NCBI GenBank assembly: GCA_002269645.1 | Contig: NIVC01000666.1 | Span: 310,001 to 374,000, forward strand | Source: Macrostomum lignano | Lineage: Eukaryota | Reading direction: 5' to 3' | Length of the DNA stretch: 64,000 bases | Part shown: positions 1 through 42,660 of the stretch, piece by piece | How positions within the stretch are numbered: position 1 is the first letter of the stretch | Layout: the number at the start of each line of letters is the position of its first letter | The notes under the pieces: generated by a model | Told to the model about the DNA's origin: nothing | Databases searched by the model: none | Seen by the model: only the letters and a program-made list of their open reading frames with translations | Translations under genes and position numbers: made by a program

Positions 1-2182
1 TTAAGGCAATGGAGGGTTGGCGGCGGTAGCCGCTCGTGTCAATTAGGCCATTGCCTTAAACTCTGACTTCCGATGAGCATCATTGCTAAAAATTTCAAAA
101 CTCTTACGTAATCTACGCACTTTATGTACACTATCGTGAATTCTTATCAGTCGATGCTTCTAAGGGGGTTTGAAATAAGGTTACCTCCACCTCGCCTATG
201 TCTCACCTTTAAGTCGCGCACCTGAAGTCACCCACCCCTTACTCTGCACCCACCCCTAAATTAATTACAAATATAAATATTTGCGTGTCTAGAGATCAAA
301 TCTCAGATAGAGAAAAGCGGACGGCTGCAGAGATGGAGGCACCGCTCATTAATTGGAAGCATTTGCCCTGCAGTGAGCTGGGCAACGTGACTAAGGACGA
401 ATTGAATTTTGTTTCGGAGGCTTCTTACAATGACAGAAGGGACGACGAGTTCGCTAGATTTCTCGAATTCATTCAAAAGGAGCCCGAGCCCGATGAGCAT
501 CTGCCGCTCCTGCAGGAAGGCGGCGTAGATATCAGCGCCATGGACATCGCCGAGATTGACAGCCTACCAGCAGACAGCAGGAAGCAGATGATCAGCCATG
601 GACAGCGGTTCAAGACATTCCTCACAGAGGAAAATCTTCAGCGCAATTTACAAACCATTCCGAATTCGGTGCTCAACCAATACATTCGCTACTTCTACTT
701 TAAACTGAAGAAGATTGACGGCGAACCCTACTCTCCTGCATCGCTGGTGTGCATCAGGGCTGGACTGCAGCGCTATTTGCGGATGATCGAGAAGCTAACC
801 GTTGACATCATCAATGGAGAAGACTTTTCTTCTGCAAATAGCATGCTGCGTGTGAAGGTTCGAGACTTTCACCAGAGTGGTGGGAGGACGCAGCAGTTTG
901 AGCCAATCGAGGAGGGGGACATGAGGAAGCTGATGATCTACTTCCAAGGCAGCACAGCTGAAGTTGAGCAGGACAAATTCTTATTCTACATCATATACAG
1001 CTTTGGCGAGCGAGGCCAGGAGCACCTCAAGTTCTTGAAGGATAGAAGCTCACTTCAATTGCACGTCGACTCTGATGGAAAGCCGTACTACTGTCTGCCT
1101 CCGTTGCCCTCGAAAAATAAGTCAGCAGATCCAGAGAAGGCCAAGAAGCAGCCGGACAACAAGCAGGCCAGAATTTACGACGTGGAAAAGGTGGAGAAAT
1201 ACCTCAAGCTGCTTCCAGTTACAACGAAGGACAACAATCTGTTTCCTCGTCCTTTGGCCAGCCGCAACGATGAAGGCCCTGTTTTCTCCTCGAAGCAGAA
1301 CCGTGGAGAGAATTATCTGAGTGGCTTCATGAGAAACTTGAGTACGAAGGCGGGACTTGCGAAGACCTACACGAATCATTGCATTCGGTAAGACTGATAA
1401 ATTAATAATAGTAACTTTAATTATGTTATGATACATGTTATGTTACCAGTTACTCATGAATCCAACTATATAAATTTGCACTCTAAAACAGGGTCACGCG
1501 AATATGCGATCTCGAGGCGGCAGGGCACAGCATGAGCGATATAATGAGCATTACTGGACAGCTGAGCGAGCGAACGACTAGGAGGTACCTAGCCAAGCGT
1601 CGCGACCGGTCGCTTCAAAAGACGAGTGAGTCTGTTCAGGTGGCGTTGAATCGTCATGATCTAGAGCAAGAAGCTGGGCCACCCGAACATGCTGATGCTG
1701 TTGAGATTGTCGGTGAGACTGCAGTATCGACGGAGGTTAGTGTTAGCACTGAAGCTGCCTATTCTGTTGGTACGAAGTTTGCCTTCAACAATTGCACCTT
1801 TCACGGATGTTCCTTTAATTAGGCATGCAATCTTTACTTCTACAGGAATCAGCAAATTGTACTCGTAGAATTACTGAAAGAATAAGAACGACAGTCTAGT
1901 TTAATATTTTTTATTTAATGACTTTTAGTACTTTGCTCGACCAGTATGATGTTCATCACCGACAAAAATTTACATGATATACTGACACCAGCTGTGCTTT
2001 TTGTACTGTCGATTTTGCAATTCTTGTGCCAGTTTAATTATTTACATCTTAAAATAAACGTTTTGAATTGACTGATGCAAAATATGCTTTGCAAGATGCT
2101 GGATAAAAACTGGCTTGAATTAATTGGTTGCATTGGAATTGGAATTCTAGGCAATGGCCGGCCATTGCCATGGGTCATTGCC
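1..2182 (+). mobile_element. Crypton DNA transposon (boundaries tentative)
   Basis: The YR gene is flanked by related inverted motifs: TTAAGGCAATGG(1-12)...CCATTGCCTTAA(48-59) and the palindrome GGCAATGGCCGGCCATTGCC (2150-2169). Confidence 0.6.
333..1822 (+). CDS. Crypton-type tyrosine recombinase (DUF3504/KCTD1-QRICH1-ZMYM-related), 2 exons, ~461 aa
   Basis: Exon 333-1387 has YSPASLVCIRAGLQRYL, FGERGQEH (catalytic R) and YTNHCIR (HxxR). A GT-AG intron at 1388-1491 (CG|gtaag...aaacag|G) joins in frame to VTRICDLEAAGHSMSDIMSITGQLSERTTRRY (catalytic Y) and a Crypton-like FNNCTF C-terminus. The start may lie further upstream (ORF open from 285). Confidence 0.85.
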
Positions 2183-2527: not shown

Positions 2528-3097
2528 AGATTAAGGATTCTTAAAGTTAAAGAAGTCGAAAATGAGACACACAAGGACCACTAGAAGTAGAACTAGGAGA
2601 CACAACTTGTGACAAATCAAAATAAGGCGCAACTTTTGGAATCACCTAGACATATCTACAGGCATCACGCGCATGAAAATCAATGTCGGCTCAGAGGAAG
2701 AGTCAGGTGACACCGTTTCAGCCGGTAGCGAGTTACACATTTGTGTACCAGTAAAAACAACCAGGTGAACTCAAAGGCTGTGCATCTACATGTACATGTA
2801 TGTGACTTAACCCCATGGAAGCTGTTGACCCGAATTTCGAGCTTGGTATTTAATGTCGAACATTGTCTCTAAGCAAGCCCTACAAATCAGCTCACCAAAT
2901 CGATATTCGCTGCTGTCTTGATCGGCACTCGCGGCTTCATTGGTGTCTCTAGTTGAAGACGTTGGCATATTGGAAATGTCCGCTGAAAGTTTAAGCAGGA
3001 AAAGCATCGGTTAAGGACAACAACCAGTGCACAACAGAGACCAGCGTCTCTGACCGATACCGGAATCAAAACTGTCAAAAGACTGAAGTTGGAGCTA

Positions 3098-3253
3098 CTA
3101 ACCGGAACTTCCGCTTCTGCTGAAGCCCCTTCCACCGCCTCGCCAAGCTTCGCCTCTTCCTGCGCGACCTCTGAAGCCGCCTCTGAAGTCGCCTCTGAAG
3201 CCGCCTCGGCCTCTTGCCGCTCCTCTACCTTCGCTCATGCTGTTCTGCGGAAC
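3098..3253 (-). CDS. Possible terminal exon or short ORF encoding an RGG/RG-rich peptide
   Basis: After a ctattccag acceptor, the minus strand reads VPQNSMSEGRGAARGRGGFRGDFRGGFRGRAGRGEAWRGGGRGFSRSGSSG*. Upstream exons were not resolved. Confidence 0.35.
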   Translation of the reverse strand, partial: VPQNSMSEGRGAARGRGGFRGDFRGGFRGRAGRGEAWRGGGRGFSRSGSSG

Positions 3254-4019: not shown

Positions 4020-4385
4020 AGGGAAATGGAATATCTTGGGGAATTCAGGAGGGAATATCTTGGGGAATTCAGGAGGGAATATCTTGGGGAATTCAGGAGG
4101 AAATATCTTGGGGAATTCAGGAGGAAATATCTTGGGGAATTCAGGAGGAAATATCTTGGGGAATTCAGGAGGGAATCTCTTGGGGAATTCGTGAGGGAAT
4201 CTCTTGGAAAATTTGTGGGGGAATCTCTTGTGAGGGACTTTCTTGGGGAATTCGTGAGGGAATCTCATGGGAATTTCAGGAGAGAATCTCTAAGAGAACT
4301 CGGGAGTGAATCTCTTGGGGGATTCGGAACGGAATCTCTTATGGAATTCGGGAGGGAATCTATTGGGGAATTTAGGGAGGAAATC
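4020..4385. repeat. 24-bp minisatellite (GGGAATTCAGGAGGAAATATCTTG), degenerating rightwards
   Basis: 24-nt period, visible as 8-aa periodicity in three overlapping spurious ORFs. Confidence 0.9.
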
Positions 4386-5069
4386 TCTCTCATCGAGAGG
4401 AAACTTGGTGGTACTCTTGAGCGTCTTGAAATAAAACAAAAGTTGAGGTGGAAAACAAACTGACTTGACTCCTAATTAAGCGCATTTATACTAGTTTTCA
4501 ATAGTTCTGAAGGCGTATAAAGATCGCAAAGCTTTTTTACAGAGAAAACAGAGAAAACAGTCCGAGAGAGCAGACTATCATGGAGTACAGAGAAGAAGAC
4601 TATTACATTTACCTTTAGACCTTAGACCTTAGACCTATTACCTCTATTACCTTTAGACCTTGGATTTTTTGTCTTTCAATATACATACCGACTACCGAGC
4701 CAGGGGCCAGGGCCTTCTGAGGTCTGTCAATTTGTGTGCACCCCCAACCCCTCAGCTCGAATGCGTGCATTGATGGCTAGGCTATAAATGTACATACGCT
4801 GTATGTACACTAATTCGGGGAATATGCGATTATTTCCAAGAAATTTTTGGGTTTCCAACTCCAATTTAAATTGCCAGACCGAAGCGTATTTAAATACGAG
4901 CTAAATGTGACTTGATACTTGGTGATAAGCTATGAGTGTAACTTTCGTTTTCCTGATTCAAATTGAATTCTGCATCTGCAATTTTGGTGAATCACTGCAA
5001 CACAAGGTAAGCAAAAGCTTGTGATATACGAGTATAATCTACACGCTGTTAAAGCCCGCAGATTTCGAA

Positions 5070-5510: not shown

Positions 5511-6960
5511 TTAAGGAAGATGAGAGTGGAAAGGCGAGGAACTGGAAAGATTAAAGATGCATGGGAGAACAGAGTAGAGGCGAGAGATGGGATGATGGAA
5601 AAGATAAAAGAGGAGAGACGAGGAGAGAGAGAAGCAAGAAGAGATGGGAGAGAGGAGAGAAGATGATGGATGAGATGAGAAAAGAAAGGAGAGGAAGGGA
5701 GAAAGGAGACAGAAGAGAAGAGTGAGGAGAGAGAAGAGAGTAGGGGAGAAAGGAGACAGATGAGAAAACTGAGGAGAGAGAAGAGAGGAGGGGAGAAAGG
5801 AGACAGATGAGAAAACTGAGGAGAGAGAAGAGAAGAGGGGAGAAAGGAGACAGAAGAGAAAAGTGAGGAGAGAGAAGAGAAGAGGGGAGAAAGGAGACAG
5901 ATGAGAAAACTGAGGAGAGAGAAGAGAGGAGGGGAGAAAGGAGACAGATGAGAAAACTGAGGAGAGAGAAGAGAAGAGGGGAGAAAGGAGACAGAAGAGA
6001 AAAGTGAGGAGAGAGAAGAGAAGAGGGGAGAAAGGAGACAGATGAGAAAACTGAGGAGAGAGAAGAGAGGAGGGGAGAAAGGAGACAGATGAGAAAACTG
6101 AGGAGAGAGAAGAGAGGAGGGGAGAAAGGAGACAGATGAGAAAACTGAGGAGAGAGAAGAGAGGAGGGGAGAAAGGAGACAGATGAGAAAACTGAGGAGA
6201 GAGAAGAGAAGAGGGGAGAAAGGAGACAGATGAGAAAACTGAGGAGAGAGAAGAGAGGAGGGGAGAAAGGAGACAGATGAGAAAACTGAGGAGAGAGAAG
6301 AGAGGAGGGGAGAAAGGAGACAGATGAGAAAACTGAGGAGAGAGAAGAGAAGAGGGGAGAAAGGAGACAGATGAGAAAACTGAGGAGAGAGAAGAGAGGA
6401 GGGGAGAAAGGAGACAGATGAGAAAACTGAGGAGAGAGAAGAGAGGAGGGGAGAAAGGAGACAGATGAGAAAACTGAGGAGAGAGAAGAGAGGAGGGGAG
6501 AAAGGAGACAGATGAGAAAACTGAGGAGAGAGAAGAGAGGAGGGGAGAAAGGAGACAGATGAGAAAACTGAGGAGAGAGAAGAGAGGAGGGGAGAAAGGA
6601 GACAGATGAGAAAACTGAGGAGAGAGAAGAGAGGAGGGGAGAAAGGAGACAGATGAGAAAACTGAGGAGAGAGAAGAGAAGAGGGGAGAAAGGAGACATG
6701 AGAAAACTGAGGAGAGAGAAGAGAAGAGGGGAGAAAGGAGACAGATGAGAAAACTGAGGAGAGAGAAGAGAAGAGGGGAGAAAGGAGACAGAAGAGAAAA
6801 GTGAGGAGAGAGAAGAGAAGAGGGGAGAAAGGAGACATGAGAAAACTGAGGAGAGAGAAGAGAAGAGGGGAGAAAGGAGACAGAAGAGAAAAGTGAGGAG
6901 AGGGAAGAAAGGAGACAAAGTTCAAAGGACCCGAGGGACAGAGAGAGAGAGGCAGAGGCC
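5510..6960. repeat. GA-rich array with a 47-bp unit (GAGAAAACTGAGGAGAGAGAAGAGAGGAGGGGAGAAAGGAGACAGAT), ~26 copies in 5700-6920
   Basis: The unit recurs at 5762, 5809 and onward; it explains the L/S/F/P-rich ORFs 5432-7126 and 5551-6918. Confidence 0.95.
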
Positions 6961-7099: not shown

Positions 7100-10000
7100 A
7101 TGGCTCACAGTGACCAGTCTCGGCAACAGGTATTCGATGAAGGCTTTGACTATGTCTGCGCGTCTGCTCAGGACAATGGTGAGCAGTTGTTGCTTGGTTG
7201 AATTATAATCAATTTATTGCCTAGAATCTATTTGAACTTTTTCAACAATCACGATAAATACGAGCGTTGAGCGTATAAAAGTACAAATATAAACCTACAT
7301 GTATATAGAAAAGCTCCTTTGAGCCAGCCTCCTTAACGCTCCTTAACAGTTTTGCCTCTGTTGCACCTTTCTAAGAAACTCACCCGAAAGTGAACACGTT
7401 TAACTTTATCAGAATGCAATTTTTATGCACGCAGTCAAACATTAGATTCATTTTCTCGCTACTGTTAGTAGTATTAGCAGCGTGATAATGCCTTGCACAA
7501 CCGGCGAGAGGCATTGCTGCCCATTCCGCCGACTCCCCTGAGCAGGCACACAAGCGCGCGGATACGTAAGCAGTCATACGCACAGGCACTCACTCACACA
7601 GGAGTGTACAGCGGCCCTAACTTTATTTATCATTAGGCATGTACACTTCATTCTAAGGGGGGGGCCGTAGCCCAGCGGTAGCGCAGCTGCTCTGGTGTGC
7701 CAGCGACCCAGGCTCGATTCCAAGTGCAGTCACATTCATTTGGGGCTGAATTGGAATCTCGGCTTGGCTCTGCTCGTGCAATTAACGGCCTTGAGAGCCA
7801 ACCCCCCCAAGGCGCAGTGAAGTGTACATGCCTAACGATAATATAAAGTTAGGGCCGCTGTACACTCCTGTGTGAGTGTGTGCCTGCGTACGTATCCGCG
7901 AGCTTGTATGCCTGCTCAGGGGAGTCGGCGGAATGGGCAGTAATGCCTCTCGCCGGTTGTGTGCCTATGTCGCTTAAAGTGCGCCAGGGTGCACACAACC
8001 CCCCTGCCTCAAATAAAAAAACAAAACACTTCATTCTGTCTTTGGTGGGTTGGCCTTCAAGGACGTTAATAGCACGAGCAGAGCCAAGTCGAGATTCCAA
8101 TTCAGCTCCAAATAAACGTGACTGCACTTGAAATCAAGCCTGGGCCTCTGGCAAATCAGAGCGCAGTGCCCCTTATTATAATCAATATCAGCCACAACTA
8201 ATGCTTTTCTAACCCTTCTGAAATTCTGCTTACCTTTCCAGGCGCGCAAAAGCAATTTAAAATTCACAGAGGAAGCAAAATAAGAGCTAGAAGAGGCCGC
8301 GGCGGAGGCGGCGGAGGGCGAAGCGACGGATTGAACCTGGGTGGTGGCGAAGTTCCAGGTAAGCTGACTCAATCACGTGGCTCAAACAGCCAGTATAAAG
8401 TTTAGTAATAGCGAGAATAGCAAATATGGTCTCGTATAGTTTGAATCCACTGGTAGATTAAGTAGATTCCGCAGTAATACTTCGTACTATTGAGGTACTA
8501 AGTACGTATTAGGAGATGCCTTAAGCTCATTGAGGACACCTTAAAGCAATTTTACTGTTTAAGAGTTAACTTAGACTTCTTTTTATTTTTTTACAAGGGT
8601 TTGTAGCCTATAGTGGTTAGACTGAAACGTCGGGGGTTCGATTCCTGATCCTACTGGAACAGTTTGTATCCTTGACCTTGAGTAAGACACTTAACTCCGT
8701 ATTTCTGCAGTTCACCCAGCTGTAAAATGGGTGCCAGCATTAGCTGGTGTAATTGAGGGTGTGTGGCCACCCTCCAGTCCTTGGACTGAACAGCCGTACG
8801 CAGCCTTCAGATGCGCCGCGCAATAGCTGCGGCTGAGCTGTCGGTTGCACATCTGGCCCAATTGGGGCGGGCGCAATCAATTTTTTTCTCTTTTTTATGT
8901 AAGCTCATTTTTTATCAAGAAATGATTTCATCACAAGCAGTTCTCAGATGCAGCGTTGACAGGTTAGCTTTAAGTGTATACCATGATCTCTCGTCCGATC
9001 TCAGAGTTTCGTTCCTTCTAAACAGTTCTCTGATACACGTTGAGTCGTTAGCTTGATCAAAGCAGTACTCAGCACTGCCTGACGTCCTGTTTCTAACTGC
9101 ACGCATTCAGCAGATTTTCCTCGCCCTGCTGTCGATGCGCCGCCGACTGCAGCGCCAGCTACGAGTAGTCAAGACGGCAGTGAGTTCTGATTTGGTGAGT
9201 TTGTGTCTCGAAATCACAACTCTGTAAGCTCATTCAACGGTTTGAATGCGATTCTGTACGTGGCCACATTTAATTGAGGCTTATACACAAAAATTAGTCT
9301 AGAGCTTCTCAGACGATTCATACCCATCCCAAACTTTATGCCCATCCCAGACGTTCCAACCATAGGGAGCATGTAAAAATATTCGATACCAATTAGACAA
9401 ATCCAGGCTTGATCAGCCGTTGAAAGCGTTCTCCTTTACTTACTTTACGTTCCCCACCGCACTCCATCCAGGCTATTTGGTTCATATCAGCCCCGGCAGG
9501 TGCGGCTACGTTACCTACGAGGACAGTCCGTCAGCCAAACACGGAGCCATTTTTGGTCACCACTGGGTCCAGCAGCTCGACTTGAAGCTCGGCGACAGGC
9601 TGCAGTACAGAATCGAAAAAAATGGCACAAAAGATGTAGCGAGAGACATCAGCAAACCGCCACATGTACTCGTAAAACAGGACTTGAAAGTAGCAGCTCT
9701 GCCAGCTGCAAGCCCCACTATCAAGGGCACAATAACTGGGACGCACACACTTAAGACTTGCCAATCGAAAATATACCACGTGACGACCGACACCGGTAAG
9801 CAAACAGTTCTGCCTCGGAAGCTGTACTTCAGCGGCTGGGACCCGAGCATGGAGATCAGGTCACCTGCACACCGCGCGAGGCGAAGCCTGGCCAGAAGCC
9901 GACAATGGACATGCGGCTGGAGAAGCCCGTCCAACGAAGCGATCAACAAGTCAGCAGCTTCATTGAGTCGCTGAGTAGCAAGACGAGCAACAGAGACATT

Positions 10001-13000
10001 CAGCAGTTGCTGGAGGTTCCTCCTGGCTGGTCGATCGTCGGTCAGTGGCCCCGACTGAGTGCTGACTTGCTGTACACTGTGTTGGAGTTCTTCGTGCGAG
10101 TCAACAGTAGAGCGAGTGCATACCAGAAGCGCGACATCGGCCTGAGCATCCAGCATCTCATGCACGAGAAGAACTTCCAGCTCGATCGAGGCGCCTGTCG
10201 CCAGCTGTTCACAGAGGCAGCGAGCAAAAGTTACTCAGCAGACAAAGTGAGTACACTCAAGACGTTCTGCGAGATGGTTGGTCAGCTGGTTCCAGACAGA
10301 TGCTACCTCACCATGCAGCTGTGCCAGCAGTTCTACGACACTCACTTTTCTGGCAAAGATGCTTTCGAGCTGGCCAAGCTGATGTGCCGGAGGTTCCTGC
10401 CAGTGAGAAACTCCGACCTGAGCTGGCACGAGCTGTCAGCCACCTTGAGTAAGGAGGAGGTGTTGAGCTCGACCGACATGGGCGAGACAATCCGGCTGCT
10501 TCCGCCAATGCGAACTCATGCTCCGTACGACTCGGTGGCCGATTATCTCGAGACGAACCTGAAGCTGCTGCGTGCGGACTGCTTCGAGAAGCTGAGATCC
10601 GGCATCCGGCAGTTCATTGGCGGCAAGTTGAATCGCCGAGACATGACAGTCTACCATCAAGTCGAGCTCAGAGGCATCGATATTACTCAAAAAGAGTTGT
10701 CCTTAGTGCTCAAGATCGAGCCGTTCAATAGGGTGGTGAAGGACTGGGAGAAGTCTCCGTTGCTGATGTTCGGAAATTTGCTCTGCTTGTCGTTTGACGA
10801 AACTTTCACAGAGTTTGTTTGCGTGACGGTGAGTAACAGGGACTCCGGTCTGCTGAACCAGTTTGGTCTGATCTTTGTCGAGCCGATATTCGAATCGGGC
10901 AGCATCGAGCTGTGTGATCTGCTACGACGGCTTCGACTTCAGAAGTCGAGTCTGTGGTTGGCCGAGTCTCCGACCTACTTCCAAGCTTACCGGCACGTGC
11001 TGGCAAACGTGCAGGCTCTGAACGGCAAGACGTTGCCACTGGAGAAGGAGCTGGTGTCGTGCACTTTCGATTCAATACAACTGGAAGAATCAGACAGTGA
11101 AGATGAGTCTGCAGAGTCAGATATGATGGCTTATTCGGGAGAATCTTTAACCTCTAGATGGCCTCACTCAGGTATTCTACGATCGAGGCTTTCATACGTT
11201 CAATGTGAGAAAAGTGCGATTAAATTATTTCAAGACGAGATCTGCAAAGGGTTGGATGGGTCGCAAACGCAAGCGTTTAGAAACTGTACTCAGCGAAAAA
11301 TCTCCGTCATCCAGGGACCGCCAGGCTGTGGAAAGACCTACGTTGGTACACACCTCGTGAGGTACCTAACAGCGCAGGAGACCAAGAGACACAGGAATGG
11401 TCCCGTTCTGTTGGTCACCTACAAGAACAACGCTTTAGACGAGTTCATTCGTAAGATTCTCACGCAGCAAAGTTCGAAAATCGATTTGATTCGCTTTGGT
11501 GGTCGTTCAAAGAAGACTGAGCTAACCAAAGATTTAGACATCCGCTCCAGGAGAGACACCGTGCAGGACAGGGACTCCAGGGAGCAGTGGCGTCTGGTTG
11601 AAGAAGCCAAAGAAGCTCTGTTGAAACACCTTAACTCATTATTTGGCAATGAAAACACGGTATTCAATGAGAATCTCCTGCTTGTATACTGGACTGAAGA
11701 CTTGCAAAGTAGATTCTGGAAGCAATTTCTTCAGCAATCAGCTGCTGCCAGGCATCGACATTCGCAGGTAGGGCGCACAAATCAGTTGGATAAACTGCGA
11801 GTTGCTGTGCGGCAGTGGATTCCACAGCAACCTGTGATTGATAAATTTATGCCGACTTTGCTTCAGGCGCTACAGACGAAAGATGCTACCCCAAAGAGTA
11901 ACACAACAAACAAGACTGAGGAAGAGGCAGAATAGGATGAACTCAACGACGAACAGGAACAGATAAAGACAGAGCGGCTTCTGGCTTCAGGAGGAGACAG
12001 TCGAACCACCTTCAGCCTGAACTTGAGTCAGCAAGAACCCAGCCCCGTGAGACTGGACCAACGACTGATTCGAATCGTCTCAGAGAAATGGCATACGTTG
12101 CGCTACACCCAGAATCTGTGGGAACTCAGGCCCGAAGACCGATTCCTGTTCATGCAGGGTTGCTTGTTGGACCACTTTGACAAAGCTTGGACGAGACACA
12201 GCTCCAAACTGAACTTTTTGTTCAGACAGTATGAACGACATCGAGACGAGTACAAGGAAGCTAACCTGAACAGAGATGTCAAGATCTGTCAAGACGTCGA
12301 CGTGATTGCGATGACCATCACGGGTGCTTCAATCAATAACGAGTTGCTGAAGAAGCTCAGACCGAACACAGTTATTGTGGAGGAAGCGGCGGAGATCATG
12401 GAGCCAATGCTTCTTGGCTGTCTTGGCGACTGGACGGAGCGACTCTTCCTGATCGGTGATCACAAGCAGCTTCGGCCGACCGTCGAGAACTATGAGCTAG
12501 TGAAGCACTGCCACCTGGATGTCTCGATGATGGAGAGACTGATCAACTGCGGTTTTCCGTTTGACTGTCTTCAGTTTCAGAACCGAATGCGACCTGACAT
12601 TTCCAAGTACCTGAAACTCGACGTCTATCCGGACCTGCAGGACAACATAGACAGCGTGAAGGGTCACGACATTCCATCGTTCATGCCGAAGGCCGTTGCA
12701 TTCTGGGACGTAGAGAACATGTCGGAGTCAGGCGAGCGAAGCTACGTTAACAACGGCGAGGCAGAGCTGATCGTTGAAGTAGCGATGACGTTCCTGAGGT
12801 TCGGGTACAAGCCAAGCCAGCTCACCATCCTCACTCCGTATCAGGGCCAGGTGCGGCTCATCCGACAGAAACTGCGACCACGTTTGGAGGATTGGGAGAG
12901 AGACGTTTCAAATCGTTCAGCTGCACTTGCGGATGAGGCTAACGAAGGCTTCATCAAAGTGCACAGCATCGATGTGTACCAAGGCGACGAGAACGACATT

Positions 13001-14845
13001 GTCCTTGTGTCGCTGGTTCGCAGCGAGAAGCCCGGATTCCTTGCATCGCTCAACCGCCGATGTGTTGCACAATCGCGGTCGCGCTGCGGTCTGATCTTCA
13101 TCGGCAAAGCTTCATTGCTGAGAAAGTGCGCCGAGTGGAGCCAGCTGCTGACCGCTTTCGATGAGGACGGCGTTCTGCGATCCGACTTTCAGGTGGTGTG
13201 CCGGAAGCACGGAACAGAGCACAGCTGGAGAAGTGCAGCCGAATTGTCTAGAATGAAGGGAGTCTTCTGCAGAAGTAAGTGCGTGGAAACCATGACATGT
13301 GGTGAACACGTCTGTCCGAAGCTGTGCCAGCCTTGGCATGAGCATGATCGGTGCGACAAAATGGTCATTGTGAAGCTGCCGTGCTCACACACCACAAAAA
13401 TCCAGTGCTTCTTGTCATCAGACCCTAGGCACTTGAAATGCGAAGAAAAGTGCATTCGCATGCTGAGTTGTGGTCATCCTTGTCCGCTCAAGTGCTCAGA
13501 AATATGTGATTCGAAGCACTGCACCCAGAATATCGAAGCTCAGCTGAGCTGCGGCCACGTCCAATCCAAGCTGTGCAACCAGCCGTTTGGAACATGCCAA
13601 GAATCTGTTGCAAAGACTCTGCCGTGTGGACACGTGAAGCAAATGCTGTGCTTTGAGTGGAAGAAAGTAATACGAAATACGAAAATAATACAAAGTAATA
13701 CGAAAAATACGAAATACAAAATCGTAAAGTGCACAGAAACGTGCTCCAAGAAGCTGCCGTGTGGCCACCAATGCACACAGAAGTGTTTCGAGACTTGCTC
13801 TCCTCAGCTGTGCATCGTGAACGTTTCCAAACGGTGCCTCGCATGCAAAGAGCAATTTGGGAGTCCGTGTGGGAAGAATCAAACTCATTGTGACCGAATT
13901 AGGACTGTGAAGCTCTCGTGCGGTCACGCGCTCAGAACTCCGTGCAGCCAATCTTCCACAGCGTCGCTGGCTGCGTGTAAGAGACCATGCGAGAAGACGC
14001 TGCCGTGTGGACACAAATGCCAGTCTGTGTGCTCAACCTCGCCCTGTCCTCCATGTCCGGAGAAGGCATTTAGGAAACTCTGTCGCCATGAGTGTCAGTG
14101 CTGGGAGCTTTCTGAAGAATGTCTCACCGATGTGACCAAGAAGTTTCAGTGCGGTCACGAAGAGACAGTTGCTTGCTGCGCTCTTGCCAGACTGCTTGAG
14201 GGTCAGTCGTGCTCTGCCTGTTGGGGTTTGGAGAAGCAGATGAGGCTGCGCCAGCTGCAGTCAGCTCATGGAAGCGAAATCAAGCGAAAAATGCTGACGG
14301 AGACCGACGAGAACACGGCAGTCGAATACTTCAAAGTGCACGATCGGGTGATGCGGTACATCAAGAGTGAGCACTCAGTCACGGTGAGAGCAATTCTGAG
14401 CATCGAGAAGATTGAGAACCCAGCTCTAGACCGACGTCTTCTGGATGTGAGCAGCCAGCTGGTCAAGAAGGACGCCGTTCCAGAGCTGTTCTTCCATGGA
14501 ACCAGAAACGCAATCGCCGAGCTCATCATCAAAGAAGGATTCAAGGTGGGCTCAAGTGGAATGTACGGTGCAGGGATCTACTTTGCCACGGACACCACGA
14601 AGAGTATTCAGTACTGTCGCGAGTCCGGAACAATGTCGCTTCTGCTCTGCGACGTCCTACTTGGGAGAACGATGGTGTGCGACAAGCCGCAGAACCACCT
14701 GAACCTGAGTGCCGTCAATGGTGCCGACTACGACTCGGTGTTCGCCAGACGGAACACGAAGGGCACAGGAGGAGTGCTGAACGATGAGTACATTGTGTAC
14801 CGTCCGGAGCAGGCGGCGCCGAGGTACCTCATCCGGTTTCAGTAG
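7100..14845 (+). CDS. znfx1: ZNFX1-family SF1 (UPF1-like) helicase with N-terminal cold-shock-like folds and a C-terminal PARP-type ART domain (~1880 aa); this copy has 1 frameshift and 1 internal stop
   Basis: Proposed exons 7100-7178 (CACCATGG), 8242-8358, 9111-9179 and 9472-14845, all joined by phase-1 GT-AG introns. ZNFX1 signatures: YLETNLKLLRADCFEKLRSGI, LMFGNLLCLS, Walker A IQGPPGCGKT (~11310-11340), IVEEAAE, LIGDHKQLRP, QFQNRMRPDI, YQGDEND, and many CGHxC..C NF-X1 fingers (13270-14230). Frameshift at ~9849-9851; in-frame TAG at 11933-11935. Confidence 0.9.
7495..8172 (-). mobile_element. Older copy of the same SINE family, split by the younger copy (pieces ~7495-7654 and 8026-8172)
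   Basis: The reverse complements of both pieces match the 3' and 5' parts of the 7655-8025 element and join at the duplicated 12-mer. Confidence 0.8.
7655..8025 (+). mobile_element. Full-length tRNA-derived SINE (~370 bp) with A-rich tail and 12-bp TSD
   Basis: A box TAGCCCAGCGG (7668-7678), B box GGCTCGATTCC (7711-7721), tail AAATAAAAAAACAAA, TSD ACACTTCATTCT at 7643-7654 and 8026-8037. Confidence 0.85.
8597..8810 (+). mobile_element. tRNA-derived SINE of a second family with a conserved V/Deu-type central core
   Basis: A box TAGCCTATAGTGG, B box GGTTCGATTCC, core CCTTGAGTAAGACACTT...CACCCAGCTGTAAAATGGG. 3' end uncertain. Confidence 0.65.
9472..9925 (+). other. Two tandem cold-shock/OB-fold-like domains at the ZNFX1 N-terminus
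   Basis: YLVHISPGRCGYVTYE..AIFGHHW..LKLGDRLQYRIEKNGTKDVARDI, then KGTIT...KLYFSGWDPS/GDQVTCTPREAKPGQKPTMDMRL across the frameshift. Both fit the CSD pattern G.I....IF.H...L..GD.V.F.......A.NV. Confidence 0.6.
14280..14845 (+). other. PARP-type ADP-ribosyltransferase catalytic domain (H-Y-E)
   Basis: LFFHGT (His 14495-14497), GMYGAGIYFA (Tyr 14579-14581), LLLCDVLLG, DSV, NDEYIVY (Glu 14786-14788), PRYLIRF. Confidence 0.9.
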
Positions 14846-15739: not shown

Positions 15740-17370
15740 TCTGAAATGACATGATGCTGTAGCTGAAATGAAATGATGCTGTAGCTGAAATGACATGATG
15801 CTTTAGCTGAAATGCATGATGCTGTAGCAGAAATGACATGATGCTATAGCTGAAATGCATGATGCTGTAGCAGAAATGACATGATGCTATAGCTGAAATG
15901 ACATGATGCTGTAGCTGAAATGACATGATGCTGCATCTGAAATACATGATGCTATAGCTGAAAAGATGAGATACTGCAGCTGAAATGCATGATGCTTTAA
16001 CTAAAATGACATGATGCTGTTGCTGAAATACATGCTGTAGCTGAAGTGACATGATGCTGTAGCTGAAATGACATGATGCTTTAGCTGAAATGCATGATGC
16101 TGTAGCAGAAATGACATGATGCTATAGCTGAAATGAATGATGCTGTAGCAGAAATGACATGATGCTATAGCTGAAATGACATGATGCTGTAGCTGAAATG
16201 ACATGATGCTGCAGCTGAAATACATGATGCTATAGCTGAAAAGATGAGATACTGCAGCTGAAATGCATGATGCTTTAACTAAAATGACATGATGCTGTTG
16301 CTGAAATACATGCTGTAGCTGAAGTGACATGATGCTGTAGCGAAAAAGACATGATGCTGTAGCTGAAATGCACGATGCTGTAGCTGAAATGACATGATGC
16401 TGCTGCTGAAATACATGATGCTGTAGCTGAAATACATGATGCTGTAGCTGAAATGACATGATGCTGCTGCTGAAATACATGATGCTGTAGCTGAAATGAC
16501 ATGAAGCTGCAGCTGAAATACATGATGCTGTAGCTGAAATGACATGAAGCTGCAGCTGAAATACATGATGCTGTAGCTGAAATACATGATGCTGTAGCTG
16601 AAATACATGATGCTGTAGCTGAAATGACATGATGCTGCTGCTGAAATACATGATGCTGTAGCTGAAATGACATGAAGCTGCAGCTGAAATACATGATGCT
16701 GTAGCTGAAATGACATGATGCTGCAGCTGAAATACATGATGCTGTAGCTGAAATACATGATGCTGTAGCTGAAATGACATGATGCTGCAGCTGAAATACA
16801 TGATGCTGCAGCTAAAATACATGATGCTGCAGCTGAAATGACATGATGCTGTAGCTGAAGTGACATGATGCTGTAGCTGAAGTGGCATGATGCTGTAGCT
16901 GAAGTGACATGATTCTGTAGCTGAAATACATGATGCTGTAGCTGAAGTGACATGATGCTGTAGCTGAAATACATGATGCTGTAGCTGAAGTGACATGATG
17001 CTGCAGCTGAAATACATGATGCTGTTGCTGAAATACATGATGCTGCAGCTGAAATACATGATGCTGCAGCTAAAATACATGATGCTGTAGCTGAAATGAC
17101 ATGATGCTGTAGCTGAAGTGACATGATGCTGTAGCTGAAGTGACATGATGCTGTAGCTGAAATACATGATGCTGTAGCTGAAATACATGATGCTGTAGGC
17201 TGTAGCTGAAAAACATGATGCTGTTGCTGAAATACATGATTCTGTTGCTGAAATACATGATGCTGTTGCTGAAATGACATGATGCTATAGCTGAAATACA
17301 TGAGGCTGTAGCTGAAGTGACATGATGCTGTAGCTGAAGTGACATTATGCTGTAGCTGAAAGGCATGATG
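15740..17370. repeat. 21/22-bp satellite (GCTGTAGCTGAAAT[G]ACATGAT)n
   Basis: Dozens of tandem units; source of the spurious MYFSYSIM/QLQHHV ORFs. Confidence 0.95.
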
Positions 17371-17929
17371 CTGTTGCTGAGAAGAATGAAATACAAGTAG
17401 AAAGTCAATCAGTTTTTACTCACAGAGACAATTTTTGTTAAAACGTTTAAAAGCAAGCGCAAAGCATGTGCGCTCACAGCAAACTGTTTATTGAGACACA
17501 ACACTCAGGACAGGATCAAGTGATAATTTGAATTAATTATTTGCAGCGGATCAGGTGGTACTCGTAGCAATTAACTTGGATTACGAGGCCATAAGGATGT
17601 TAAAACGACAAGGATAAAATTGCATTATTATTACTATTAGTAGAACATCGCAGAGATACATTCAGTAAGCGGGGGCAAACGCAGGAAACACGCAGATGAA
17701 GCGAAACAGAAGACAAATGCAAAATTCATTCACACATTTTGTATTGTTTATAGCCAAGTTCATTGGGCGAAGTGTTTGAAAACGATTCTAACTCAGACAA
17801 CGGACGCTGTTTCTATTATTTAAAAAAGCAGAATGTCACATAAACATTAAGCCGACACCAAGTTACTGCCAGTCACAGGGCGAATGGCGAAACACGACCG
17901 CGCTATACTAGTAATCATAATTAGTGAGT

Positions 17930-18409: not shown

Positions 18410-21400
18410 TCAGGCAGACTTCACAGCGATGCCGTTGCTGTTAGCGTGGGCGGCTCGCGCTACGGGTGGCTCCTCGCCGATGACCGGCTGCGGCGGCTTC
18501 TTGGCGCCCGGCAGCAGTTTGAACGGCCGGCGGCCGGCCCGCTTCAGCTGGGCGCCAGTCAGGTGCGCCCGGAATCGCTTCGTATCGAACAGCAGAATCT
18601 CCTCGGCGGCGGCGGCTGCAGCTCCGGCCGAGTCGAGCTTCGTCGGCCTGGCCTCGCCGTTTCCGTTGCCGTTGGCATCCAGGCGCTGTACCTTGGCGGC
18701 GGATGAGAAGCCGCAGTTCTGCTGCGGCTCCGGCTGGCTGCGCTTGCGGGCGGTTGCCGCTGAAGGCATCAGCGAATTGCCGTTGGCGGCCGGAGCAGCC
18801 GGTGACGGAGCTGCGGCGGCGGCGGCGGCCCTGCGCTCGTCCAGCTGCAGAAAGAACTCGGCCAGCTGAGCCGAGCTGACCGGAGCAAACGCGCGGCGCT
18901 TCGTTGCCGCGTCCTCCCCGGCGGCTCTCGACCTGGGCTCGAGCAGGATGTCCGGCTTCGCGTCCGTGTCCAACGATGGACAGGCGATGCGCAGTCGGGC
19001 ATCGAGCTGTCCAGGAGGCAGCCGGTTGCATCGGCGCCGTCTCAGCTCGGCCCGCCTGGCGGCCGCCGCGTCGAGCAGCTGTTGAACACCCCGACCGTCG
19101 GCCTGGCAGCGCTTCGGCAGCTCCAGCAGCGCCGGCTTGGCGTCGAAGGCCGCGTTGAACGGGCGGCGGGCGAGTCGGCGCACGCGCAGCAGGTCGGAGC
19201 AGAGCAGACTGGCCAGCTGGGCGGTGGCATTGGCCCGCATCAGCATGCTCTTCACCGCCTTCACCTTGCCCGCCTGCATGCTCTGCAGGCTGGCCTCGTC
19301 AAGGCCGTGCGCCGAGGCCGCGTGCCGCACCAGCTGCGGCCGCAGGCGGAACTCTTTGTCGCAGTCCACCACCGGGCAGCGGAACACCCGGCCGGAGCTG
19401 CCGGCGCCGCTAGCAGCTGACGGGGCCGGGCTGGGCGACTTCTCCGCTCGTGTTGGATTCTTCAATCCGCCGTATCGTTTCCAATAGTTCCAGCAGGATG
19501 AGCACAGGCGGCAGGACAGGTGCGGCGGGCCCCAGGCGAACCACTGACCGTTGGAGGTGGCAGTGCCGGAGCAGCTCTCGCAGCAGCGGCTGGAGCCCGG
19601 CAGCTCCGGCCGATTGTACAGCACGCCGGGATTGGGCTTCGTATAGTTGGGAATGTACACCTGGGGATGTAAGTTGGATTTCTTGCAGTTGGGAATGTAC
19701 ACCTGGGGATGGAAGTTGGGCTTCGTATAGTTGGGAATGTACATATGGGGATGGGGGTTTGGGCTTCGTGTAGTTGGGAATGTACATATGGGGATAGGGA
19801 TGGGCTTCGTGTAGTTGGGAATGTACATATGGGGATAGGGATGGGCTTCGTGTAGTTGGGAATGTACATATGGGGATAGGGATGGGCTTCGTGTAGTTGG
19901 GAATGTACATATGGGGATGGAAGTTGGGCTTCGTATAGTTGGGAATGTACATATGGGGATGGGGGTTTGGGCTTCGTGTAGTTGGGAATGTACATATGGG
20001 GATAGGGATGGGCTTCGTGTAGTTGGGAATGTACATATGGGGATAGGGATGGGCTTCGTGTAGTTGGGAATGTACCAGGTACATATGGGGATGGGGGTTT
20101 GGCTTCGTGTAGTTGGAAATGTACATATGGGGATAGGGCTTGGGCTTCGTGTAGTTGGGAATGTACACATACATGCGCAACCTCCAAAATTCGGTCGGCC
20201 ATGCGACTTAGTTTTAACAAAAATGCGACATAGTTTTTGGCCAAAAGTGCGACTTACATGTAAAAAAACCTAAAGCAAAATTAACGCAACTTTGGGTAAA
20301 CGGCAAGAGTAACTATGACTGTCTTATAAGGCCAAAATGCCTCGTCAGCTACTTAGTACTACTACTTGGGTTTTTGGGTGGGCATTTTTGCGACTTCCTT
20401 GGTTCACCACCAAATAGGTCGGCCGGATCGGCCGACTCGGCCGACTGTTGCGCATGTATGAATGTACATATGGGGATAGGGCTTGGGCTTCGTGCAGTTG
20501 GGAATGTACATATGGGGATAGGGATGGGCTTCGTGTAGTTGGGAATGTACATATGGGGATAGGGCTTGGGCTTCGTGTAGTTGGGAATGTACATATGGGG
20601 ATAGGGCTTGGGCTTCGTGTAGTTGGGAATGTACATATGGGGATAGGGCTTGGGCTTCGTGTAGTTGGGAATGTACATATGGGGATAGGGCTTGGGCTTC
20701 GTGCAGTTGGGAATGTACACCTGGGGATGGGCTTGGGCTTCGTGCAGTTGGGAATGTACACCTGGGGATGGGCATTGGGGTTCTTGCTGGGTAGAATTCA
20801 CGCCAAAAGATGAATAGAATTGGCGCCGACTGAATAGTTGAAGCATTTTAATGCCAAAAAACAAAAGTAAACAAACAAACCTGCTTCAGTTTCTTCTCAG
20901 CTTCCGAGGCCTTCAAGCGCTTCTGCTGCACGTATCTATCCGTGGTCTTCCACATGTAGAAGTACTCCACTATCGAGCGCATAGATTTCCAAGAAAGATA
21001 GTCGCGCCGAATTTCGTTAAAGTCCTTGCCGAACTTGTTCATGGCCTCCTCGAACAGGTTGCACTCGCTAGCTGACCAGTCCTCCAGCTGGTCGCGGCAC
21101 AGCACGGGCCCAGAGTCGGTCACCAGCCGGCAGAAGGCCCGGCCCAGATCGTACTTGGACGAGTGCAGCATTCGGTAGGCGTGGGCCTGGAAATGCCGAG
21201 TTTGAGGCGGTTTGATGCTGTTGTGCTGTAGAAGTCCTAAGGTCACTAACAAATACAGGGATGCTAATCTAAAACTACGAACTTACCAAGCCTCTTCTTC
21301 AAGTCTCGGATTCCGAATCCTAATTCCCTAATCCCAGATCCCGAATCAAAATCCCGAACCCCAGATCCCGAATCCCAATCCCTTAATCCCAGATCCCGAA

Positions 21401-24400
21401 TCCTAATCCCAAATCCCAGAATCCGAATCCTAATCCCAAATCCCGAATCCTAATCCTAATCCCAAATCCCGAATCCTAATCCCAAATCCCGAATCCTAAT
21501 TCCAAATCTCAGATCCCGAATCCTAATCCCAAATCCCAGGTTCCGAATCCTAATCCCAAATCCCAGGTTCCGAATTCTAATCCCAAATCCCGAATCCTAA
21601 TCCCAAATCTCAGATCCGGGATCCCAGGTTCCGAATCCTAATCGCAAATCTCAGATCCGGGATCCCAGGTTCCGAATCCTAATCCCAAATCCCGAATTTT
21701 AATCCCTAATCCCGAATCATAATCCCAAATCTCAGATCCCGAATCCCAGGTTCCAAATCCTAATCCCAAATCTCAAATCCCCTAATCCCAGGTTCCGAAT
21801 CCTAATCCCAAATCTCAGATCCCGAATCCCAGGTTCCGAATCCTAATCCCAAATCTCAGATCCCGAATCCTAATCCCAAATCTCAGATCCCGAATCCCAG
21901 GTTCCGAATCCTAATCCCAAATCCCAGGTTCCGAATCCTAATCCCCGAACCCCAGATCTCGAATTCTAATCCCGGAATCCCCTATTGAATCTTAATTTCC
22001 GAATCCCAGTGATTCCTCGCATCCTATATCCCGAATTATTAATGTCCCGAGGACCCAAATCCCTATTTATTGAATTTCATATCTCTAGAGCGCCGGAAGC
22101 CCAAGTAAGCCTGCCACAAACCTGGGTGTAGTCGCGACTAGCCGCGGCCGCAGCAGCCGCCAGTCCGGGCTGACGCACCGAGCTGCAGGCGTCCACAGCT
22201 CGGGCCAGGCAGCCTACCGACCGAGCCACCAGCAGGTACTTGTCAATGTCGGCATCGGACAGGCCGTGATCTGGCCGCCAGACCAGCTCCTCCAGCTGGG
22301 CCAGGTCGCGGCCGTCGGATTCTCCGTCGCCTAGCAACGGTTGAACCTCGGCCTGGTAGCGGCCGCCGACCCGGATTTCGCCGCGATCGGCCAGTAAACT
22401 CTTCTGCGCGGTGTCGTAGGTCAGGGTGTAATAAAAGGCGTCGTCCCTGGCCAGATAGGAGGTCAGGGCCTCGGTCTCGTTCAGCAGGGTCACGGCGCAC
22501 TTTCCCCGGATGGTTGTGGCCGGTAGGGTCTCCACCTGGCGGGATAGGAACAGCTCTCGATGGCGCAGCTGGTGCCGCTGAACTTCCGTGAGGCTTCCGC
22601 CGCTGGGCTCGGAGCTGGCCGCCTCGGCTTCGCCAGCTGCCGATGGCTCATCGTCCAGGCCTAGGGGAGGAGGGAAGACTCTATTAGGCACGGCTCGTCT
22701 GTAGGAAGCTTTTCTGGCGGAGAGATGCTCCCCGAGAGGTGCTTTCGTCTGCTGTCAGTCGGTCGGTCGAGGTTTAATGTGATGCCTGCCAGTCTCACAC
22801 TGTCTATTTGCCAGTCTCACACTGCCTATTTGCCAGTCTCACTGTGTGTTTGCCAGTCTCACACTGTCTATTTGCCAGTCTCACTGTCTATTTTCCAGTC
22901 TCACTGTGTGTTTGCCAGTGTCACAGTTTGCCAGTCTCACTGTGTGTTTGCCAGTCTCACCTTGTCTATTTGCCAGTCTCACTGTCTGTTTGCCAGTCTC
23001 ACTGACAGGGTCCAGCGAGATTAACCAGCCTTAAGCTTGATTTTGAACCGTGCGAAATTACGATAAATAAACAAGTCGGCTGTGGATCGTCTGTCTCTTC
23101 TCACAGTTTGTCTATGACAGGCTGTCTGTATCTCTTGACAAGCCAGTTCTTTCTTTGGAGCAGTCTGTCTCATCTTTTGACAAGCCAGTTCTTTTTTTGG
23201 AGCAGGAATAATTGCTTTCGCTAGCTGCTGAAACTTTCCCATTCAATCGGAGTTTCCCATCAGCGCTGGACGAAAATCGAAATCTCGTCTAATGCGAATT
23301 TTTCTCTAACACACGCACTCGGGCGCTACGATGAGGCTCTCTACGTTTACTACCTTTATTCCGGAGTACACAGCATTCAGATAGACCCAAGAGGGTTAAA
23401 ATAGGCAAAATGAGGCTCTCTACTATTCCTGTTGCAGTTTCTCTACATTTTCTGATCTAAATGAAATGATAGGATAGTCGAAAAAAAATGAAAAGCAACG
23501 CTGCTTACTCAGATGCTTGTCAGCTTGGCTAATGAGATTATTAGAAATGTCGCGCCGCCTAAAGAAGCACATAACCTTAGCTTCCACATTGCCAGTTGGG
23601 GTCTTTGTAAGCTCCTCGATACGCCGAATCTGATATGGTCCGGAGGCTGAGGTCTCGAAGTACACATAGTCTGCAATTGAATGGTGTTGCTTCTGCATAT
23701 CAATTGGTGACTGTGCATTGCAGGCATTGCTTGTATTTAAAAACGCTATATTTAAAATTCAGGAAGCAGTGACAACTTGGATATTTTATTCAAGAATCAG
23801 AGTTGCAGTGCCATTTGGCATCCTAGGTCCAAATTCTAAAGTTGGCTAACAAGCCAAATCAAAAATCGGGATGCTAGCTAGCATTAGTCAAAAGTTTATA
23901 ACCAAATAAAATACTAACCATACCCTTTACATTGTTGGGCCTTTGACTTCTCAAGAGTTCTTAATCTTAGTCAAATCTAAGCCTTTGCAGACTCCATATT
24001 TACAGATAACTCAAAATTTACCATGGATTAAGTCTTAAAATCCCAAGAATCCCAATATAAAAGAATTACTTTAAATCCATTTGAATTATATAAAATATAA
24101 CTTAGCTAAAAAGATTTATTTTAAGGAAGTTTTGTACACTGTGATAGGCTTATCATGAGCTAGGTTATAAGAAACAATGTTTTTTGTTAGGTATATATAG
24201 AAAGCAGATTTTGGCCTTTGGGATTTGGTATTATGAAGAGGATGAAGAGTTGAAGGTAAAGAGTTATGTACAATTTTAGCAAAATTTGCACTGGTTTATA
24301 ACTTCTAAAAAATACAGAAAGCCTTCATTGATTATTCTTACATCAAAGAGCAATTTAAAAAAAGTGATAAATAACTATAGAAAGCAACCAATAGAATTTG

Positions 24401-36000: not shown

Positions 36001-37371
36001 GGCCGATTCCGCCGACGTAGAAGGAGCTCCGCCAGTCCCCGGTGATGCCATCGCCATGCCCGGAGCCTTCTTAGCTGAGGCGGTGGAGCCTTTGCGCTTC
36101 GTGGAGCCGCCCCGACGAAACGAGGCAAACAGTCGGCCCAGGAGGCCGCCAACCGGCTTTTTGCCCTCCGGAATCGGCGGCTGCTCCATGTTCGGATCCT
36201 CGCCGCGCGATAACGACAGCGCAGCCGATTGGCGGTCGCCGGGCACGCCGCCGCCGCCGCCAAACGCCGATATCGGCCGGTCGGGCCGATCGAACTCAGC
36301 ATCGGGAGATACTGGAGGCTGCTGCTGGTACGGCGGCTGCTGCGGCTGCTGCTGGTATGGTTGCTGCTGGTATGGTGGCTGCTGCTGGTGCTGCGGCTGG
36401 CGTGCTGGCGGTTCCGGCTCCATCCCGCCGACGTCGCTGCCCTCGTCATCCAGGGTAGCGGCAAGATAGCGATGCAGGTCGGTCGGGTTGGCCGGATTCG
36501 GCAGCGCCGGTTTCGTCGTTGTCGGCGGTGGCGGAGGCGTGGTCGGGGGCGTCGGAGTGCTCGGCCGGTTCCACTGCGGCGGTCGGAACTGGTCGTCATC
36601 CTGGTCGTCCTCATCCGCCTCGCTGTCGGCTTGCTGCGCTCGCGGGTCCGACGTAGGCGGGGGCGGCGGGGGCGTCGGCGGCGGCGGAGTTGCCACCCTG
36701 GCATCGTGAGCTTCAACATCGTCCTCGTCGCTCTCAGCCGGGTAGAACTGCTGCTGGGGTTGCGGCGGCGGCGGCGGAGGGGGCGGCGGCGGCGAGGGGG
36801 ACGCCGGCGGTGGAACTTGCGGCCTGGCTGCCGGCTTCGGCTTTGGTTTCGGCTTCGGTGCAGGCGGCGGCGGCGGATGCTGACGCCTCGGTGGCTCCTC
36901 GCCGAATCCTCTGGCATCCTCGTCCGATGCAGTGTCGGAGGCAGCCGCCGGAGCCCGCTGCTGCGGCACAGGCGGGGGCGGTGGGCGAGCGGCAGGTTGA
37001 AAATTGGCTTCCCCATCTTCATCGCTTTCGTCCGCAGTCGGCGCCACGCCCGCCGCGGCGGCAGCAGCAGCGGCGGCAGCAGCCGCCTCCGCCTCCGCCT
37101 CCGCCTTCGCCTGCTTCTTCTCCCTTCGTCGACGCCTTCGCTCTTCTTTTTCCTCGGGCGTCTCGTCCTCTCTGTTTTTCTTCTTCTTCTTGCGCCGCTC
37201 ACCATCGCCATCGCCGCCTCCATCGGCGTCGCCGGGCTGCTGGGTGGACTTCTTCCGCCGGTGCCGCCTCTCGCCGGCCTCATCGCCAGCCTCGGCCCGT
37301 TTTGATGAGCACTTCTTCTTGCGAGCCTCGCCACCGGAGGAAATGTCAATGCCGACCGCGACTTCGGCCAT
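33062..37371 (-). CDS. epb41: Band 4.1 / Coracle-like FERM + FA domain protein with a long Pro/acidic N-terminus, ~929 aa
   Basis: Exons 37371-35614 (..VRVILLDGEE..DYFGL..FWLD..NFQ), 34934-34366 (VKFYPPEP..TRYQLCLQVRQDI..GKLPC..QSELGD..YGVDLH..FAWPKILRISY..NHR), 34124-33701 (WAKRLWKIAIENHSFFRL, FA region) and a probable last exon 33100-33062 (TRSSSTANDDIL*). The last exon is less certain. Confidence 0.92.
33245..33585. repeat. 16-bp minisatellite (GGGATAAATCCCAGTA), ~20 copies
   Basis: Near-perfect tandem units in the last intron of the FERM gene. Confidence 0.95.

Positions 37372-42621: not shown

Positions 42622-42660
<39 letters not shown>

Follow-up and report, generated by a model that had tools for sequence, protein, structure and literature searches.

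The locus at positions 7100-14845 of a genomic stretch from the flatworm Macrostomum lignano raises the question of whether one gene can encode, in a single protein, both a sensor of RNA and an ADP-ribosylating effector. The stretch, hereafter the window, is 64,000 nucleotides (nt) long and corresponds to positions 310,001 to 374,000 of contig NIVC01000666.1 in assembly GCA_002269645.1. A preliminary description had proposed such a sensor-effector, in which a ZNFX1-type RNA helicase is joined to cold-shock folds and to a PARP-type ADP-ribosyltransferase (ART). Our analysis indicates that the window copy is probably a recently disabled duplicate of an old helicase-PARP family, and that RNA-triggered ADP-ribosylation may be a property of the intact members. 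The closest database proteins were from M. lignano, with 93-100% identity to the gene.

The proposed limits of the gene were exact, with the ATG at 7100 and the stop codon at 14843-14845. A splice-site check gave a five-exon model on the plus strand with canonical GT-AG boundaries. Exon A (7100..7178; MAHSDQSRQQVFDEGFDYVCASAQDN) carries the start codon and ends at the donor atg/GTGAGC; this exon is conserved in a homeologous locus, L004. Exon B (8242..8358; RARRGRGGGGGGRSDG) is a short Gly/Arg-rich segment of the RGG type, in phase 1-1 with canonical AG/GT boundaries. Exon C spans 9111..9194 with the donor at 9195, or 9111..9179 with the GTGAGT donor at 9180, and both donors have the same phase. 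The splice model places exon D at 9472..9795. The main exon E (9951..14845) is read in frame 2 and contains one TAG. If the 155-nt interval before it is left unspliced, this exon is continuous from 9472, and the terminal exon counted from there is about 5.4 kb long.

The claim that one transcription unit encodes the whole protein was not confirmed, as the frame is broken at 9188-9190, 9842-9844, and 11933-11935. The first lesion changes CGA to TGA and lies in exon C when the donor at 9195 is used; the upstream GTGAGT donor at 9180 skips it in the same phase. The second is a 1-nt deletion in a run of C inside cold-shock fold 2 (CCC versus CCCC in L004). The GT..AG interval 9796-9950 (155 nt) restores the frame here, but deletes the second half of the fold. 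The third changes GAG to TAG between helicase motifs I and II, at a site where the protein P0001 (UniProt A0A1I8GUL3) has Glu. In the best splice model the TAG remains, at codon 858, and alternative models add the TGA and the frameshift. The 430 nt upstream of the TAG contain no GTRAG donor, so removal of this stop codon by splicing is implausible. With two nonsense codons and a frameshift, the window copy as assembled is therefore unable to make the full-length protein. It would yield at best an N-terminal fragment ending before motif II, or an 897-aa C-terminal open reading frame (ORF). The database protein that matches the locus exactly (P0032) is this 897-aa ORF (12152..14845, plus strand), which begins past the TAG and does not include Walker A. 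Thus, a sensor-effector in a single protein could not be upheld for this copy.

Two kinds of repairing intron were tried and rejected. Among 195 GT..AG intervals that would remove the TAG in frame, none had the GTRAG donor of all five inferred introns. Mini-introns of 37 nt or 53 nt in fold 2 gave a wrong phase or a truncated fold, and L004 shows a simple 1-nt deletion at this site.

The polarity of the lesions was read from related copies. The three sites in L004 are CGA, CCCC, and GAG, and the protein P0150 (UniProt A0A1I8JMK6) reads SEFRFG, with Arg, at the TGA site and has an unbroken cold-shock fold 2. Since L004, P0001, and P0150 have the unbroken states, all three lesions are derived in the window copy. 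L004 is a syntenic second locus on contig NIVC01000708.1 of the same assembly, collinear with window positions 2217-24062. Its copy has lesions of its own. A 532-bp segment (window 10280-10811) is missing, single nucleotides are deleted at two places, and two further deletions, of 42 nt and 84 nt, keep the frame; the catalytic Glu is lost with the 84-nt segment.

In exon E, the window and L004 copies are separated by 35 synonymous and 32 non-synonymous differences, with a synonymous divergence (dS) of 0.039 and a ratio of non-synonymous to synonymous divergence (dN/dS) of 0.25. This ratio departs from neutrality (p=6.6e-8); counted in the two wrong frames, it rises to 1.26 and 1.76. The value of 0.25 shows that the gene was under constraint until recently and that its decay is recent. 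When the amino-acid changes between the two copies were polarized, they were distributed 6 versus 6, without signal. The simplest reading of these comparisons would be purifying selection until recently, with redundant copies now decaying independently. M. lignano has undergone a recent genome duplication, which fits such independent decay. A search with the N-terminal half for an intact annotated copy returned only relatives of 29-35% identity, and this search missed even P0001. The window copy is most likely a young non-functional pseudogene or decaying duplicate that may still be transcribed.

Several points weigh against this assignment. The lesions are known from a single long-read-based assembly, and the 1-nt deletion sits in a homopolymer, where assembly errors typically occur. 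Canonical, in-phase GT-AG splicing can avoid the TGA and likewise the frameshift, which leaves the TAG, a single base, as the only unavoidable lesion. Furthermore, every helicase and PARP catalytic motif is conserved in the window copy, and the dN/dS is 0.25. The locus could thus be an intact gene for a full-length sensor-effector, with lesions that are assembly errors or are bypassed (the donor at 9180, splicing of 9796-9950, and a wrong base at 11933). We regard this as unlikely. The TAG is a substitution and not an indel, no plausible intron removes it, and the exactly matching database protein starts after it. Consensus errors are unlikely to produce two independent nonsense substitutions as well as a frameshift in the same gene, and the sister copy is also decaying, with large deletions beyond sequencing noise. 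An assembly artefact is unlikely for the two nonsense substitutions; it could account for the homopolymer indel.

The 897-aa ORF suggests another possibility, in which the locus expresses a shortened and neo-functionalized protein with half a helicase, the fingers, and an active PARP, acting as a helicase-independent ART. The ORF is present in public protein sets, the sister locus has a near-identical ORF from the same Met, and the window copy retains an intact PARP domain. However, the ORF starts about 2.5 kb past the first AUG and behind a long upstream ORF, which makes its translation unlikely and nonsense-mediated decay of the mRNA likely. The sister ORF also lacks the catalytic Glu, which speaks against the short form having been selected for PARP activity. 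A functional short protein is therefore very improbable, and a recently disabled duplicate remains the preferred description of the window copy.

The domains of the encoded protein were examined next to those of its relatives. Most of the domain list in the preliminary description was confirmed, namely the RGG segment, the ZNFX1 domain, the helicase, and the PARP domain with its H-Y-E triad; the cold-shock folds were recovered only indirectly, and the NF-X1 fingers had no Pfam match. The Pfam scores of ZNFX1, AAA_11, AAA_12, and PARP were all well over their cut-offs. The ZNFX1 domain (PF25396; 10637..10894, plus strand, as are all features of this gene) lies N-terminal to the helicase and scored 51.4 bits against a cut-off of 27 (1.2e-13). 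The N-terminal part of the helicase (AAA_11; 11252..11737) contains the Walker A motif GPPGCGKT at 11315-11338. The part from motif II to motif VI (12215..13111) comprises the C-terminal part of AAA_11 and AAA_12, with VIVEEAAE at 12371-12394 and NRRCVAQSRSR at 13052-13084. AAA_11 was matched in two parts (3.4e-15 and 8.9e-12) and AAA_12 at 6.7e-33. The core of this UPF1-like superfamily 1 (SF1) helicase is complete, as Walker A, motif II, and motif VI are present, and the TAG separates motif I from motif II. The motifs GPPGCGKT, VIVEEAAE, QNRMRP, YQGDEND, and NRRCVAQSR are invariant in comparison with homologues of 30-40% identity.

The helicase is followed by a Cys/His-rich zinc-finger region (13193..14227) of 345 aa, with 50 Cys, 17 His, and four CxHxCx3C cores. 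It aligns with its counterpart in the PARP-bearing homologues P0002-P0007 and looks NFX1-like by its pattern. Pfam zf-NF-X1 did not match the window sequence even at E<=1, and it is also missing from the precomputed Pfam lists of bona fide ZNFX1 orthologues. An RZ-type finger (PF20173) was absent by Pfam from the window protein and from P0002-P0007; the proposal that the protein ends in an ART and not in the zinc-finger/E3-type region of vertebrate ZNFX1 was thus borne out.

Two strongly diverged cold-shock-like folds may lie in the N-terminal part. Fold 1 (9474..9665) has CGYVTY where cold-shock domains (CSDs) usually have GFGFI, and the 1-nt deletion divides fold 2 (9723..9925) between frames 0 and 2. 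Pfam CSD (PF00313) did not match the window sequence at E<=1, and a hidden Markov model (HMM) built from 13 homologue CSDs found nothing significant when run against the window ORFs of all six frames. In relatives, the homologous segments at the N-terminus did match Pfam CSD (P0006 at 2.2e-7 and P0099 at 2e-6). Furthermore, a family profile of the N-terminal region matched the CSDs of Unr/CSDE1 in PDB at 9.5e-15, the best PDB match of that profile, while the window folds themselves are too diverged for detection by Pfam or the HMM. An AlphaFold (AF2) model of 9474-9665 was a five-strand barrel with a confidence score (pLDDT) of 87.9. The top Foldseek matches of this model in PDB were nearly all CSDs (CspA/YB-1/UNR), with TM scores of 0.67-0.73 and E values of 0.03-0.5; the AF2 input alignment contained CSD-bearing homologues, which qualifies this result. 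Of these lines, the predicted fold is the only one that supports the window folds themselves, and the support is indirect.

The PARP catalytic domain (PF00644; 14324..14839) is intact in this copy. It scored 73.6 bits against a cut-off of 26.7 (2e-20), and the match spans profile positions 3-197 of 199. The description of the ART as intact therefore stands for the domain and its H-Y-E triad, and fails for the gene, which has three lesions. By alignment, the triad consists of His 14495-14497, Tyr 14579-14581 (with a second Tyr at 14612-14614), and Glu 14786-14788, and none of its columns varies across the family alignment. In PDB, the window ART matched tankyrase-1/2 and PARP4 best, with His, Tyr, and Glu aligned; FHGT, GIYFA, and DEYIVY of the window correspond to FHGS, GIYFA, and AEYVIY of tankyrase-2, and align likewise with PARP4. 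As a single sequence, the domain matched PARP4 at 4e-10 and tankyrase-2 at 8e-9, and the PARP-like domain of ZAP weakly at 3e-5. The top match of the family PARP profile was tankyrase-1 (5e-18), with PARP1, PARP4, and PARP15 ranking lower. By these sequence matches, the domain appears closest to tankyrase and PARP4. Unlike these proteins, the window protein has no ankyrin, SAM, BRCT, or vWA modules, and Pfam found no match in the PARP region beyond the catalytic domain.

To place the gene in its family, a profile of the C-terminal half of the helicase, the fingers, and the PARP domain was searched, and 1621 proteins were matched at E<=1e-20. AAA_12 and PARP occurred together in about 106 of the best 120 clusters. 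In M. lignano, the architecture is carried by the paralogues Mlig016543g1-4, Mlig020465g1, and Mlig026662g1-4. The M. lignano paralogues P0151 (1970 aa) and P0156 (2000 aa) have ZNFX1, the helicase, and two PARP stretches, and both are annotated as partial. The other carriers included the octocorals Xenia sp. and Paramuricea clavata and the haptophyte Prymnesium polylepis. The closest full-length relatives (P0002-P0007) are about 2000 aa long and 30% identical, and are encoded by single uninterrupted ORFs. Each has a pair of cold-shock domains and a pair of PARP domains, and Glu is often missing from the second PARP domain; the window subfamily has the first PARP domain only. The near-intronless main exon was suggested to fit an expanded family, and this agrees with what was found: the family is intron-poor in M. 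lignano and comprises at least three subfamilies, with the window copy in the 'Mlig017729' subfamily.

A neighbor-joining (NJ) tree of 480 helicase columns gave a clade of animal and fungal ZNFX1 in 95 of 100 bootstraps, which excludes the window protein and the PARP-bearing proteins. In the same tree, the PARP-bearing sequences grouped weakly (56). The octocoral, haptophyte, and flatworm carriers, together with the tree, show that the fusion is old and broadly distributed and is no invertebrate or flatworm innovation. The suggestion of an effector swap that created an invertebrate module is not supported as a recent or flatworm-limited event, as octocorals and a haptophyte carry the helicase with PARP and the group lies outside the canonical ZNFX1 clade. 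Nor is the architecture new, because it is common and automatically annotated in databases, as 'NFX1-type zinc finger-containing protein 1-like' in RefSeq (Xenia) and as 'Poly [ADP-ribose] polymerase' in UniProt. A literature search found no published description of the ZNFX1/AAA_11/AAA_12 plus PARP architecture or of the Mlig genes, and a preprint on the E3 activity of ZNFX1 does not mention an architecture with PARP (bioRxiv 10.1101/2025.09.05.674436). The family is catalogued by automatic annotation alone. As judged from its sequences, it is an old, widespread, and experimentally uncharacterized sister family of ZNFX1.

The window protein was compared with known systems that join RNA binding to an effector. 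C. elegans ZNFX-1 acts in small-RNA inheritance. Like the window protein, ZNFX1 combines PF25396, an SF1 helicase (AAA_11/AAA_12) whose core motifs are all present, and Cys/His-rich fingers behind the helicase. The ZNFX1 orthologues P0009, P0010, and P0015 carry the RZ-type finger PF20173, whereas the window protein lacks it, ends in PARP, has N-terminal cold-shock folds, and has a helicase outside the ZNFX1 clade. ZAP/PARP13, PARP12, and PARP7 share the logic of an RNA-binding N-terminus with a C-terminal PARP-type domain; they use CCCH fingers, whereas the window protein has cold-shock folds and a helicase and no WWE domain. The triad of ZAP is inactive, in contrast to H-Y-E in the window protein. 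HELZ2 also fuses a UPF1-like SF1 helicase to an RNA-directed effector, and P0022, P0023, and P0025 were distant helicase matches of this kind. Its effector is an RNB exonuclease and not an ART, its helicase is 23-26% identical, and it has no ZNFX1 domain.

Based on these domains, a role of the family in sensing RNA and in ADP-ribosylation is plausible. The members appear to be built in the order of one or two cold-shock domains, a ZNFX1-type beta-barrel domain, the SF1 helicase, the Cys/His-rich fingers, and a tankyrase-like PARP at the place of the RZ-type E3 finger of canonical ZNFX1. In the intact members, the cold-shock folds would bind single-stranded RNA and the ATP-driven helicase would engage RNA. 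This engagement may bring or activate the C-terminal H-Y-E ADP-ribosyltransferase, which could then consume NAD+ in modifying bound proteins, the enzyme itself, or perhaps the ends of RNA. Against this scheme, it must be said that RNA-triggered ADP-ribosylation is deduced purely from domain content. Moreover, H-Y-E is no guarantee of poly-ADP-ribosylation, as PARP3 and PARP4 have the triad and are mono-transferases.

The kind of RNA that such proteins would act on can be argued in two directions. A 2025 preprint reports vertebrate ZNFX1 as an antiviral RNA helicase in which the RZ finger acts as an E3 ligase and sequesters viral RNA (bioRxiv 10.1101/2025.09.05.674436). This analogy, together with copy turnover and divergent N-termini, suggests a possible immune role. 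A bolder proposal is that the family is an effector-swapped ancient sister of ZNFX1, ranging from haptophytes to cnidarians and flatworms, in which RNA recognition by the cold-shock folds and the SF1 helicase would trigger ADP-ribosylation and not RZ-type ubiquitylation. In M. lignano, its recognition end would diversify between adjacent paralogues amid fast birth and death of copies, as for an innate-immune or genome-defence sensor. This full proposal is rather doubtful. The family may instead control endogenous RNA, in germline small-RNA and transposon surveillance as with ZNFX-1 or in RNA-granule biology as with Unr/CSDE1 and tankyrase. We consider this a tentative possibility that falls short of being favoured. 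The analogy with nematode ZNFX-1 and the Unr-like and tankyrase-like affinities suggest it, since the CSD profile is nearest to Unr/CSDE1 and the PARP nearest to tankyrase, neither of which is an immune protein, and this ancient family has a member in a unicellular haptophyte. However, copy expansion, rapid copy decay, and an N-terminus of 44% identity versus a core of about 97% are often seen in conflict-driven genes, and the antiviral action of vertebrate ZNFX1 points the same way.

As the family combines the RNA-engaging chassis of ZNFX1 with a tankyrase-like ART, a rule of one RNA-sensing helicase with interchangeable modification effectors would become directly testable. An RNA-guided PARP would also be added to the few known links of RNA sensing with ADP-ribosylation. 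The window copy, as a decaying duplicate in a polyploid genome, is the wrong one to clone, and P0151, P0156, or the copies of other species are better suited.

A divergent paralogue begins 3.9 kb upstream of the gene in head-to-head orientation. Its first two exons (3238..3103 and 2982..2896, minus strand) are identical to the N-terminus of P0001, and the window does not include the rest of its exons. Its first exon contains a longer RGG box than exon B. The same head-to-head pair is found in L004, where the left paralogue occupies L004 1-1379 (minus strand), its remaining exons lie within about 1 kb, and both cold-shock folds are intact in one 459-aa ORF. The neighbouring paralogues share about 97% DNA identity from about 9760 onward (9760-14845), whereas cold-shock fold 1 (9472-9760) is merely 44% identical in protein, and the boundary is sharp. 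The pattern points to one of two processes, gene conversion acting on the core or divergence of the recognition end.

Other copies and insertions were observed around the pair. P0150 (3641 aa) is a chimeric model from another M. lignano proteome set, in which a sequence that by eye resembles a gag-pol-type retrotransposon is fused to a further helicase-PARP copy. Fold 2 is intact in this copy, which has other frame problems; its presence suggests that M. lignano has at least three copies of the right-hand type. At 285-1391 (plus strand), a 368-aa ORF has a weak QRICH1-domain match (8.2e-5, under the gathering score) and may be derived from a mobile element. It occupies the place of the coding exon of the left paralogue in the homeologous locus, and it may be an insertion that disrupts the left paralogue.

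Intron A contains nested inverted repeats at 7496-8162, with complementarity over 137 nt at 85%, 89 nt at 91%, and 44 nt at 98%. They include a tRNA-like stretch, are common to the homeologous locus, and look like an insertion of the miniature inverted-repeat transposable element (MITE) or short interspersed element (SINE) type. A tRNA gene in intron A was ruled out, as ARAGORN called no tRNA gene in the whole window.

Between the divergent paralogues, a purine-rich 47-bp tandem repeat occupies 5689-6914 (26 copies, 96% matches) and gives rise to long minus-strand Ser/Leu/Phe pseudo-ORFs and to a strong GC/AT skew at 6-8 kb. An intergenic 24/48-bp repeat at 4028-4388 and a 22-bp satellite of 76 copies at 15741-17380, directly 3' of the gene, are also present at the homeologous locus. 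The neighbours are multi-exon genes of the housekeeping type, as had been described. They encode an MTA-like BAH/ELM2/MTA_R1 protein (18410-22691, minus strand), a FERM-domain protein (34215-37371, minus strand), a Rad21/Rec8-like cohesin subunit (47722-49131, plus strand), and a DENN-domain protein (57521-58489, plus strand). A second strongly purine-skewed block at 42001-44000 (GC skew 0.51, AT skew 0.43) is probably another tandem repeat.

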